Source: Haliotis rufescens
Lineage: Eukaryota
Assembly (NCBI RefSeq): GCF_023055435.1
Contig: NW_025963835.1
Span: forward strand, 2,418,001-2,482,000
Reading direction: 5' to 3'
DNA: 64,000 nt
Shown here: positions 1 to 4,559 of the stretch, one piece after another
How the letters are laid out: each line of letters opens with the position of its first letter
Position numbering within the stretch: position 1 is the first letter of the stretch
Notes under the pieces: model-generated
Databases searched by the model: none
What the model was told of the DNA's origin: nothing
Seen by the model: only the letters and a program-made list of their open reading frames with translations
Program-made: the position numbers and the translations under genes

Positions 1-3000
1 AGTCTGAACATGCTGTAATGGCTATACTAAGACTTATCAACAAGTATCGAGGTATGACGTTATATTTCTTATTTACTTGGTTTACAGTCAAACAACCAGG
101 AATGCAGGAAAAAAATCTAGTGGTGAATGAATTAATTAAAGCCCAGTCTGATAATCAAGCTAATAAATAGGGAATATCGCAAGTTGTTTACCTGACTGAC
201 TGCGACAAGTTCAATGACCCGTTATTGTTTGCTCAAATATTCACAGATTCACGGTTACTTCAATTTGTAAAAATATTAACAATTCTGTAACATTTCACCA
301 CAGTGCCATGCGAAAAATAGTGACTTTGAAATTTGTTTTTATTTCGCATCCTAGTGACCTTATACTTGCTTACAAATCCGAAATATATTAGCTAGTTTTA
401 TTTTGAATTTATTTTTATCCCTATTTCGACCACCGGCCAATGGTTTTAAGAAACAGAAATCCGTAAACCATCTTATAAATAGATAAGTGTTATGGTTTGT
501 TTTTGATTTTGAAGACAAAAATCATTATACTTTGATTCCCAAATAATTAATTTGGTTCTCGAAAATTGAATAATGCAACTTCTGTGATCGTTACGGCATA
601 GGGGAGATAACTCTAATTCCCCTGGGGCCTCTGACCAACATCGCCCTTGCGTTGCGCCTGGATCCAGACCTTGGACAGAAACTAAAGGAGGTGTTTATCA
701 TGGGAGGTAATATTGAAGGTAAGGGACCCAGCATTGGATTTTCGGTATATATTTTTTTGCATTTTGTTGTATTTAAATTTATCTATTAATTGATTTTTTT
801 ATTTTATTTGAGTTTTTTTAAAGGGGGGGGGGGGGGGGGGTGTTTACCATCACACACACGCACACACACAATCTTTCACACACATATTACACACACACAC
901 ACTCTCACACACATATCACACACACACATATCACTCACACACACACTCTCACACACATATCACACACACACTCTCTGACACACATTTCACACACATACAC
1001 ACACTCTCTCTCAAACACTCACTCACATATCACTTACACACTCTCTCACAATCATATGTCACACACACTCTCTCACAAACACATCACACACACACATATC
1101 ACACACACACTCTCTCTCTCACACACACATACACCCACTCTCTCTCACACACATATCACACACACACTCTCACACACATATCACAAACACACACTCTCTC
1201 TCAAACACATATCACACACACTCTCTCACACNNNNNNNNNNNNNNNNNNNNNNNNNNNNNNNNNNNNNNNNNNNNNNNNNNNNNNNNNNNNNNNNNNNNN
1301 NNNNNNNNNNNNNNNNNNNNNNNNNNNNNNNNNNNNNNNNNNNNNNNNNNNNNNNNNNNNNNNNNNNNNNNNNNNNNNNNNNNNNNNNNNNNNNNNNNNN
1401 NNNNNNNNNNNNNNNNNNNNNNNNNNNNNNNNNNNNNNNNNNNNNNNNNNNNNNNNNNNNNNNNNNNACACATATCACAAACACACTCTCTNNNNNNNNN
1501 NNNNNNNNNNNNNNNNNNNNNNNNNNNNNNNNNNNNNNNNNNNNNNNNNNNNNNNNNNNNNNNNNNNNNNNNNNNNNNNNNNNNNNNNNNNNNNNNNNNN
1601 NNNNNNNNNNNNNNNNNNNNNNNNNNNNNNNNNNNNTGTAAGTTAAACGTGTGTGTATCGAAGGATTTAGAGAAAAAGGTAACTTCTCTGACAAAGACTC
1701 TATTATTTTACCAGTATTGATATACATGTATGTACCTGCAATTTCTGACTATATGGTGCGAAACCCAAGTAACTGGCCACAATTTAATTATAAGAATATA
1801 ATCACACTATTTATACGAACTGCTTTGTGTGATTTGTTTCCAGGTAAGGGAAGGCTGAGCACCTCAGCTGAGCACAACTTCTACTGTGACTGTGAGGCAG
1901 CCTTTATTTCACTGAGAGAGCTGAAGAATATAGCTATCCTCCCGTATGAGGTTTGCCTCGATACAAACATCCCCTGGGTAGGTCCTAGGTGTGTAGGATT
2001 AAAGTCCGATAGGTAACCAGGTCAACATGCCCATCGCCCAACGCCCAAAGCCCAACTCATTGGCTCTGGAATTACCACAGCCGTCTGTGTCTGTGTGTGT
2101 GTGTTTGTTTACTGCCGGTGTTATAGTGCTAACTAACTTGGATACCATGCCCTATACTTAATTCTGACACAATACACTGACTCCGAGCTGACCAGTCCTG
2201 TGTCCCCTTAATGCTGAGCGCCAGGCAGGGTAACAACCAGTACCATCTTGCTGGCAGACTAAGGATCACGATCTTCACGTTTCTGGGGTCTAACCTATGA
2301 CCAGCGGGTCCTGTAGGGCTATTGAACGCAACTCGGTTCAGCTAGATGATATTTACCTTTACTATGCCTCAGTGTCTTCATCCATACAGAGATCCAGGAA
2401 GACTGCCAAGTCCCACAATACCATTGTTGTAGATCTCACAGAGACAGATAGGTGAACAATTAGGTACTTCCGAACTGCTTTGTTTTCTTTCAGCTCGTGG
2501 AAACGTCACGGTTTCGTCGGAGTTCAACTTTTATATCGACCCTGAAGCCGCATACATCTGCCTGAGTTCGCTTAAGGCCCCACTGTCTATTATTCCGTGG
2601 GAGGTTTGTCTGGATACACAGAGACAGATACCATGGGTATGGATATGAACTACCTTAATGAATGCTGACGGAGGTTTGCATGCTACTGAGGCGTTGCGTC
2701 GTAAAGCTGACTCAGCACTTTCTCCACAAAGTCACGCGTAATCTCGTGTTCTAAGCCACCGATATACGGATTTTTTCTCCTCGAGTTGCCAGGATCTGCT
2801 GAATGTGGATTATGATCCTCGGTCTGTTATTTGCATTCAGAGCAACCTTCGCTAGCTCGAGACTGTTAGATTTAGGTAGTCAATTCAAGTGATGGGAGTC
2901 GAGTAGTATAGGGAATGGGGGTTCTGGACCACTGCCACCAAGACCCGATTCATACCCTCAAACACTGCTACCACAGAGGTCATTTCCCCCACAGTAACGT

Positions 3001-3836
3001 GTTAGGGTATGAATCTGGTCTAGGCGGCGGTGGTCCAGAACCCCCATTCCCTATACTACTAGTAGTCGTCATAGCCTAGTAGCATTTGAGAGTTATAATT
3101 CTAAGTGCTTTTGAGTTTCTACAAATTGAAAATAAATAGATGGTAAGCATGTTTGTCTCGTTCAAGCAGAAATAGTTACAAACTCTAAGGACTGGTGAAG
3201 TAATGTTCCCATAAGTCTTCTCAGCTACTTTTTAGAACGGAATTCCCAAGGCTGACACAGGTTCCCTTTGTTAGAGTCGACGAATGAGGCTTGAGATGTT
3301 AAGGTGTTACCTGATTAATTGTGTCATGCCCTGGATATTTGCTCATGCTATCTACCAATGATAATGCAGATATCTTGGAATATACGAACTCTTGTAAACG
3401 TCTGAGAGAATCAAATCGTCGTGGTCAAATCATAAAGATATTTTAACTCTCATAAAATCTGCACGTAAAGTACAAACCGTATTCAATTTATTTTCGCACA
3501 TATTTGTAGGCTGTCTACGACAAATGGATCGGCCTAGGCACCCCGAGAGCTAACTTCTTCAAGAAAATCACCGAACATTGGATTGAGAAAGTCAAGAGCA
3601 GACGACAACCAGGTTTCCAGTCATGTGATCTCTTTGCCATGACAACAGTGCTGGACAGGGAAAGCATATTGGACAAGGAGGCTGTTCATGCAACTGTGGA
3701 GCTACACGGACACCTGACCCGAGGTCAAATGGTCGTTGACTGGAAGGATAGAATGGGCAATGAGCCAAATGTGACGATAATTAAGAAAATCTGTGTTGAG
3801 AAGGTGAAGCAGTTTGTACTGGACATGCTTCAATGA
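1..3836 (+). CDS. Inosine-uridine preferring nucleoside hydrolase family gene, 5'-partial. Exons <1-51, 602-718, [1844-1977 OR 2494-2636], 3510-3836
   Basis: Spliced translation SEHAVMAILRLINKYR/GEITLIPLGPLTNIALALRLDPDLGQKLKEVFIMGGNIE/ARGNVTVSSEFNFYIDPEAA...IPW/AVYDKW...SCDLFAM...VELHGHLTRGQMVVDW...stop. It contains the family motifs EHA, GPLTNIA, IMGG, GN..EFN..DPEAA and TRGQ.VVD. All introns are GT-AG with matching phases. Confidence 0.93.
851..1491. repeat. Compound (CA)/(CT)-rich microsatellite with assembly gaps
   Basis: Degenerate cacacacatat/ctctcacac repeats interrupted by N runs. Confidence 0.95.
1844..1977 (+). CDS. Nucleoside hydrolase alternative exon A (divergent active-site exon)
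   Basis: tttccag|GTAAGG...CCCTGG|gtaggt. Encodes GKGRLSTSAEHNFYCDCEAAFISLRELKNIAILPYEVCLDTNIPW. Phase 1 in, phase 0 out, no stops. Confidence 0.8.
2494..2636 (+). CDS. Nucleoside hydrolase alternative exon B (canonical active-site exon)
   Basis: tctttcag|CTCGT...CCATGG|gtatgg. Encodes ARGNVTVSSEFNFYIDPEAAYICLSSLKAPLSIIPWEVCLDTQRQIPW. Same phases as exon A. Confidence 0.88.
2902..3060. mobile_element. Short palindromic MITE-like inverted repeat
   Basis: Arms of about 60 bp: agtagtatagggaatgggggttctggacca... and ...tggtccagaacccccattccctatactact, with a spacer of about 35 bp. Confidence 0.8.
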
Positions 3837-4079
3837 TAATACCGCCTCAGCTATCTTCACCAGGGTATCCTACCCTTTGTAACACACGCATTTTGTCACA
3901 CAGCTCAAATGTGAGATGAAATTGGGTTTGACGTCGCCTCCAAGATAATTGCACTTATTGCACTTATATAGCGACGTGCATGCACATGTGTGTGTATGTG
4001 TATGGCTTTTGTATGTTCACAAATTCTTCACTATTCAGCACTGCATTACGTTACTTCATCATACATATTAATATACATG

Positions 4080-4190
4080 GGTTGAGCGGGTAGTCGAGTG
4101 GTTAAAACGTTTGCTCGCCACACCGAAGACCCGGGTCGGATTGTCAACATGGGTACAATGTGTGAGGCCCATTCTAGTGTTTTTCCCTCA
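4080..4190 (+). mobile_element. tRNA-derived SINE family A, 5' fragment
   Basis: gggtagtcgagtggttaaaacgtttgctcgccacaccgaagacccgggtcggatt...gggtacaatgtgtgaggcccatt matches the full-length copy at 49635-49806 in reverse. Confidence 0.75.
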
Positions 4191-4559
4191 TCCAAGGGTC
4201 TTATTAGACAGTGAGTTTTTTTATAATGAGTTTAATTCTATTGCTTGTATCACAATTTTTTGGATTTATTTTCCAGTTTGTTTTCCAATATAAATAAGTT
4301 ATCTAACCTGTCACTCAGGTTCTCAGCATCTAATTTCACGCAGATCGGCCTAATTATAAGTAAGCTGGACAATTCCATCACAACTGGCAAAATCTGAGTG
4401 CATAACAAATGGTATGTGTAACTTATGGGGGACTTGTCAAAAGTCGGTGTGATCATTACTGTTTTCAGGGAGTGGTGGTGGATATAATGCACACGCGTAT
4501 ATACACAGACGTTATATTAAGGTTGAAGGTTTAAATAAACGATCAAAGTGACCTTCTTC

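Follow-up and report, generated by a model that had tools for sequence, protein, structure and literature searches.

In a nucleoside hydrolase gene of the abalone Haliotis rufescens, two homologous neighbouring exons, called here A and B, probably form an ancient tandem-duplicated pair of alternative exons with mutually exclusive use. The gene stands at the beginning of the analysed stretch of 64,000 nt (assembly GCF_023055435.1, contig NW_025963835.1, positions 2,418,001 to 2,482,000 of the forward strand), which we call the window and in whose coordinates all positions are given. The window opens inside this five-slot gene, which occupies contig positions 2,417,190-2,421,836 and is read on the + strand. 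The exons of the gene that fall in the window are as follows (a slash marks a splice border):

1..51, + strand: e0, the 3′ end of coding exon 2, ...SEHAVMAILRLINKYR, ending in phase 1; the window starts inside this exon
602..718, + strand: e1, coding exon 3, EITLIPLGPLTNIALALRLDPDLGQKLKEVFIMGGNIE; it reads ...KEVFIMGGNIE and ends in phase 1, with donor AAG/GTAAGGGA
1844..1977, + strand: exon A (134 nt, phase 1 to 0), the alternative exon of GR type, ttccag/GT...TGG/gtaggt
2494..2636, + strand: exon B (143 nt, phase 1 to 0), the canonical exon of GN type, tttcag/CT...TGG/gtatgg
3510..3836, + strand: last coding exon, 108 aa and the TGA stop

An initial annotation, made from the letters of the window, had described two paralogous exons between the exon encoding IMGG and the last exon, both of phase 1 to 0, open and with good splice sites. 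This description proved accurate. All exons of the gene have AG/GT borders, and exons A and B are each open in a single frame, the one that continues e1. The exon A peptide is (G)KGRLSTSAEHNFYCDCEAAFISLRELKNIAILPYEVCLDTNIPW, and the first 8 nt of the exon (GTAAGGGA) are identical to the 8 nt that follow e1; the exon B peptide is (A)RGNVTVSSEFNFYIDPEAAYICLSSLKAPLSIIPWEVCLDTQRQIPW. At the protein level the two exons are identical at 25 of 47 positions (53%, E=5e-16), and the indels between them are in frame.

Since both exon lengths are 2 mod 3, exactly one of A and B is needed in a productive mRNA. Inclusion of both puts exon B out of frame, with a stop after 23 codons; skipping of both brings a stop 13 codons into the last exon, as the initial annotation had foreseen in claiming that either event shifts the frame. 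Retention of the A-B intron after exon A leads to a stop after 12 codons.

The rest of the gene is that of an intact nucleoside hydrolase. Coding exons 1 and 2 lie, undamaged, immediately upstream of the window; the DXDXXXDD motif is found in exon 1, as MKVIVDVDTGIDD..., and this calcium/ribose motif is present as MKVIVDVDTGIDDATA (DVDTGIDD) in exon 1 of both copies of the gene (the second copy is described below). When the Pfam profile PF01156 (IU_nuc_hydro; cut-off 34.2 bits) was scored exon by exon, it was covered along its whole length: positions 1-65 with 62.7 bits, 53-117 with 37.8, 108-154 with 51-53, 152-202 (exon B) with 40-43 and 199-296 with 45-51. Exon e1 scored 53 bits and the last exon 51.1 bits at profile positions 200-296. 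Profile positions ∼153-192 are matched by both alternative exons, by exon B with 43 bits and by exon A with 21.9 bits, the latter value being under the cut-off.

The residues exchanged by the two exons lie in the ribose and base pocket. The G-N...E-F-N stretch of exon B aligns to E. coli RihA (chain 3g5i_A). In RihA, Asn158 and Glu164 form hydrogen bonds to the ribose 5′-OH; Phe165 is in van der Waals contact with the base mimic, and the nucleophilic water is held in place by Asn166 (PMC2898832). Exon B satisfies the ribose-binding Asn...Glu-x-Asn loop (GN...EFN). In exon A, Asn158 corresponds to Arg and Phe165 to His, with the Glu and the second Asn kept; the exon also has DCEAA for DPEAA and Tyr for the Trp of PWE. 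The Arg and the Tyr are marks of the whole GR-type exon class. The alignment upholds the contrast drawn in the initial annotation between GN...EFN...DPEAA of exon B and GR...EHN...DCEAA of exon A. An A isoform would miss only the first Asn of the Asn...Glu-x-Asn loop; it may have a different substrate range or altered activity.

Exons of the GR type, a rare class, are present in other animals. A phmmer search with exon A against 1.84 billion representative proteins gave 14 matches, among them Ptychodera flava isoform X2 (P0014), a Candidula unifasciata protein (P0011) and short open reading frames from genomic contigs. All of these named matches have G-R in place of the G-N of the family, and P-Y-E-V in place of (P/T)-W-E. 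A word-based protein search with a length window that leaves out full-length proteins, and whose blanks are therefore uninformative, gave no candidates for exon A alone and, for the last exon alone, a single distant JGI match of 179 aa, with none from Haliotis. A word search with the P. flava protein revealed three RefSeq isoform pairs, each pair from one gene and with consecutive accessions:

Ptychodera flava: isoform X1, XP_070561551.1; isoform X2, XP_070561552.1; the GR-type isoform is X2
Glandiceps talaboti: isoform X1, XP_077993336.1; isoform X2, XP_077993337.1; the GR-type isoform is X2
Lineus longissimus: isoform X1, XP_064619028.1; isoform X2, XP_064619029.1; the GR-type isoform is X1

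In global alignment the two members of each pair are identical except for one block of ∼46-49 columns, which is GN-type in one member and GR-type in the other. The borders of the swapped block in the three species are the borders of abalone exons A and B. The Lineus GR exon begins with GKGRVTPCAEHNFFCD and abalone exon A with GKGRLSTSAEHNFYCD.

In a maximum-likelihood tree built from 47 columns of 50 exon peptides, a branch with support 99/97 separates the GR-type exons, abalone exon A included, from abalone exon B and from the GN-type exons that the same genes of the hemichordates and the nemertean contain. In the approximately unbiased (AU) test, an arrangement with abalone A and B as sisters was rejected (p=0.006), as was one with the four hemichordate exons as one clade (p=0.027). 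The tree and the first of these tests reject a recent A/B duplication confined to abalone. The vertebrate, cnidarian and bivalve matches are all GN-type. These sequence relationships are read most simply as one tandem duplication of the exon that predates the split of protostomes and deuterostomes and was followed by losses.

Isoform pairs of another kind were observed in venerid clams. The isoforms of Ruditapes philippinarum (X1/X2, P0043/P0031) and of Mercenaria mercenaria (P0023/P0032) are identical through the end of the GN-type exon and diverge over the whole part encoded by the last exon (∼110 aa, homologous). This looks like a duplicated alternative last exon, not an A/B swap.

Constraint on exon A was assessed by comparison of gene copies. 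Six nucleoside hydrolase loci were identified in the H. rufescens genome; four have a single canonical exon in the A/B slot, and the A-type exon is present in only two, the window gene and its tandem copy. The tandem copy (locus L029, G000:C57:2366772-2371231) is located 50 kb upstream and is complete, with the same e1-A-B-last layout. Between the two copies the exons are 98.5-100% identical, the introns 84-96% and the start of the 3′ untranslated region 83%; the A-B intron of the L029 copy has an extra insertion of ∼590 nt. In exon A the copies differ at 2 of 134 nt (window positions 1854 and 1863), both third-position and synonymous, where ∼11 changes are expected at the intron rate of ∼8.5%. 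Exon B also has two differences (in 143 nt), both synonymous, and the last exon has four in 327 nt, one of them a replacement. No difference between the copies falls in the splice sites or in the first 8 bases of exon A. Selection on exon A, as proposed in the initial annotation, finds support both in the GR-type class of other phyla and in the synonymous-only changes between the copies. The open frame of exon A is, as far as sequence comparison tells, a product of old and continuing constraint.

Splicing of the pair in abalone was followed in contigs. A search of sequencing runs with exon A detected its words in 14 small data sets (44-118 million contig letters) from seven studies and several organisms, labelled ‘RNA?’. 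Contigs of four of these runs (X1, X5, X11 and X12, from four studies) were placed on window positions 1637-4400. The four runs behave as RNA: joints are of the GT..AG type and introns are mostly empty. Contigs drop minor branches, and depth is a poor measure in such data. Each of the four runs has the joint 2636>3510 (depths 33, 101, 64 and 4.7), and one X1 contig runs from e1 (28 nt) to B to the last exon, the B-only path. Each run also has contigs over exon A. In X1, X5 and X12 a contig starts at 1842, preceded by at least 26-28 foreign letters that are the k-1 overlap from e1; the terminal AG of e1 matches 1842-1843. The 200 nt of intron upstream of exon A have depth 0 in X1, X5 and X12 and ∼1-2 in X11. 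The overlap from e1 together with the empty intron indicates that the e1>A splice is used. Exon e1 has two successors in the RNA contigs, exon A and exon B; the depth of e1>A is, very roughly, one fifth of that of e1>B (X1, X5). Several of the RNA contigs carry variants of the L029 copy (X1: 3560T, 3611T, 3619G, 3632T).

A number of observations weigh against mutually exclusive use of A and B. In X1, X5 and X11 the donor at 1977 is passed unspliced: the contig continues into the A-B intron, which other contigs link to exon B. A 287-nt contig of X12 consists of e0 (5 nt), e1, A and B (30 nt), with a GT..AG joint 1977>2494 that is out of frame; in this run A is the sole successor of e1 seen, and B the sole successor of A. 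The joint 1977>3510, from A to the last exon, was not found in the contigs of the four probable RNA runs, and contigs lose rare variants. The constraint on exon A since the gene duplication is read from two substitutions only. Sisterhood of the two Lineus exons was not rejected by the AU test (p=0.17), and the clustering of GR-type exons over 47 columns could in part be convergence.

The A-containing RNA of these samples is mostly of kinds unable to encode the full enzyme, and double inclusion (A>B) yields non-productive RNA only. The A>B joint of X12 means that exclusion is not mechanical. The statement of the initial annotation that a single exon can be used per mRNA holds for productive mRNA, by reason of the frame, and fails for the output of the spliceosome, given the A>B joint in X12 and the retained A-B intron in X1, X5 and X11. 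Exon swap by mutually exclusive splicing, also proposed there, has the isoform pairs of three other animals in its favour and the missing 1977>3510 joint of abalone against it. Among the junctions singled out for a check, 718>1844 is used and the path e1>B>last is seen, and 1977>3510 is absent from the contigs of the four runs.

The protein-level marks of the GR class persist in exon A, and its changes are all synonymous, a pattern hard to account for without translation in frame; for this, exon A must be spliced to the last exon and exon B left out. It is this coding conservation that makes us hold mutually exclusive use of A and B in the abalone gene most likely, with moderate confidence, and we infer that abalone makes an A-only mRNA and its protein and that the substrates of the two enzymes are not the same.

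The alternative that survives best, though we regard it as unlikely, is that exon A in abalone is now mainly regulatory and unproductive, a poison exon or a recursive-splice (RS) exon with no A-only protein. In the RS version, the e1>A splice rebuilds the donor of e1 (AAG/GTAAGGGA), which is reused to remove A and to join e1 to B. Use of A's own donor would instead give RNAs that stop prematurely, either A+B or with the intron retained, and so lower the output of enzyme. The start of exon A, ccag/GTAAGGGA, indeed matches GAAG/gtaaggga after e1 in both gene copies, an AG/GTRAGT-like site that rebuilds a donor, and RS-exons of the same build have been described (PMC6224609). The contigs, too, resemble an RS intermediate: e1>A is joined, A, intron and B are contiguous, depth upstream of A is little and A>last is missing, with A>B in one run. 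A purely regulatory exon, however, has no reason to keep protein hallmarks common to hemichordates, a nemertean and a land snail, nor to change at synonymous sites only. The exon-initial GT is ancestral, because the paralogous exons also start with AG/GT from a split Gly codon; given G-K-G, the donor match needs only a ∼1-in-32 codon choice. Moreover, the e1-A intron is short and does not need recursive splicing. The regulatory reading and mutually exclusive use do not exclude each other; both can hold.

Much less probable still is a combined and more far-reaching scheme, in which the GR-type exon would be a second enzyme kept since the bilaterian ancestor and shifted to other ribosides (e.g. 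5′-substituted or 5′-phosphorylated ones), and exon choice in abalone would go through the donor rebuilt at the e1/A border, a recursive-splice switch inside a mutually exclusive pair.

It is very improbable that exon A is a young, lineage-specific duplicate that decays to a pseudo-exon and has stayed open by luck, a reading that the data largely refute. Some features are what such decay predicts: exon A scores under the Pfam cut-off (21.9 bits), it has neither the conserved Asn nor the Pro of DPEAA, and the slot holds one exon only in the genome's four other nucleoside hydrolase genes. On the other hand, exon A groups with GR-type exons of other phyla, its sisterhood with B is rejected and its indels relative to B are in frame; its two copies differ only synonymously, in a gene whose introns differ by 4-16%; and at least three runs, from three studies, show use of its acceptor. 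An assembly artefact, in which an exon of another copy or haplotype was placed into the intron next to the N stretches, would fit the N stretches and microsatellite of the e1-A intron but was rejected in view of the same e1-A-B-last order in the second gene copy, at a locus without N, and of RNA contigs that join e1-A, A-intron, intron-B and A-B.

The N stretches in question are located at 1232-1467 and 1492-1636 within the e1-A intron and were left unfilled; the genome locus L030 (G000:C57:2414000-2422500) has letters at both of them. Adjoining them, at window positions 820-1231, are a poly-G run and then a long degenerate (CA)n/(CT)n microsatellite.

The introns around the pair retain a trace of the duplication. 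The likeness of A and B reaches ∼28 nt into the upstream intron, with CGAACTGCTTTG before both acceptors; the duplicated unit thus included this piece of intron. An element is shared by the two introns:

1816..1835, + strand: intron element upstream of exon A, CGAACTGCTTTGTGTGATTT, repeat family D2
2471..2490, + strand: copy of the same element upstream of exon B, repeat family D2

The element CGAACTGCTTTGTGTGATTT was copied together with the exon and probably comprises a branch point and pyrimidine tract. Pairing of docking and selector RNA sequences was considered and rejected as evidence: one complement to the shared element (12-13 of 13 positions, G-U counted) is present, in the last exon at 3805-3817, and ∼0.2 such complements are expected by chance in 3.5 kb. 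Inverted repeats that would pair the introns were not found besides one hairpin resembling a miniature inverted-repeat transposable element (MITE). This MITE-like inverted repeat of 62 nt (window 2902-3060, in the B-last intron) is 90% complementary with a 35-nt loop. RNA contigs of X5 and X12 have nine other letters in place of 2935-2999 of the repeat, which makes it polymorphic or species-variable.

Other repeats were observed at and near the pair. An exact 14-nt direct repeat, CACAGAGACAGATA, occurs at 2437-2450 and 2617-2630 (∼0.007 expected by chance in the stretch). The first copy is in the intron, 44 nt before exon B, and the second is the 3′ end of exon B, where it encodes TQRQI, including the extra residues (aligned gap QR) absent from exon A. 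Two short stretches, at window positions 2163-2250 and 4087-4214, reach contig depths of thousands in each of the four RNA runs and show many loose ends. Both have the look of dispersed repeats of high abundance that resemble short interspersed nuclear elements (SINE-like), and ARAGORN found no tRNA in them.

Taken with mutually exclusive use of A and B, these data suggest the following course of events. The exon encoding the ribose-5′-OH/base-pocket loop (G-N...E-F-N...DPEAA...PWE) would have been tandem-duplicated before the protostome-deuterostome split. One copy would have stayed canonical (GN-type, exon B) and the other would have become GR-type (exon A), with Arg for the 5′-OH-binding Asn, Tyr for Trp and, here, His for the base-contacting Phe. 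The gene could then make two enzymes identical outside ∼45 active-site residues. In abalone B is the major form, and A is picked by some 1/5 to 1/10 of e1 donors in the runs seen; the A isoform may be minor, or limited to a tissue or stage. The A+B and intron-retained RNAs would be by-products cleared via the premature stop.

What nucleoside hydrolases do physiologically in animals is not settled (review PMC10526354). A pair that has been kept since before the protostome-deuterostome split, and that swaps a 5′-OH ligand and a base-pocket residue, suggests that two activities have long been needed from one gene, and it points to residues worth testing. The splicing seen in abalone (acceptor of A used, A-B intron retained or A joined to B, donor rebuilt) offers a small natural case on how exclusivity is enforced. 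The interest of the pair lies in its age, in its active-site position within an enzyme family of unclear role in animals and in its untidy splicing in abalone. Our literature search found no paper that links nucleoside hydrolases with mutually exclusive exons, and none for the residue numbers Asn160/Asn168; the swap itself is already listed in RefSeq for three species.

Among known systems, RS-exons (PMC6224609, PMC8605326) resemble exon A in that it starts with a strong donor, AG/GTAAGG, and that the e1/A junction recreates exactly the 5′ splice site of e1. Unlike them, exon A follows a short intron and is protein-coding and conserved as such; the support for recursive splicing here consists of contigs.

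The IU-type nucleoside hydrolases of solved structure (C. elegans-type 5MJ7, E. coli RihA 3G5I/1YOE and C. fasciculata 1MAS) share with the abalone enzyme the PF01156 fold, the DXDXXXDD motif and the G-N...E-F-N loop of exon B. All of these relatives have Asn where exon A has Arg. To our knowledge, there is no structure or assay of a GR-type enzyme.

Tandem exon duplication that gives rise to mutually exclusive exons is a well-known kind of event (PMC9013439, PMC9741552, PMC5740500). The abalone exons differ from such pairs in that neither a competing RNA structure nor a steric mechanism was found and that co-inclusion of A and B is observed. As in such pairs, A and B are homologous neighbours of the same phase and similar length, are ancient and swap a functional segment, and frame incompatibility removes the products of double inclusion and of double skipping.

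The isoform pairs of Ptychodera, Glandiceps and Lineus are gene models, in which the swap is read from model proteins, and the A-only mRNA was not seen in the abalone contigs; abalone differs, further, in that the whole gene is present in two tandem copies. The isoform pairs have the same slot and borders as the abalone exons, after GGNI[ET] and before the D/E-[KW]-[FW] start of the last exon; one member has GN...EFNF...WE and the other GR...AE[TH]NF...YEV, and elsewhere the two are identical.

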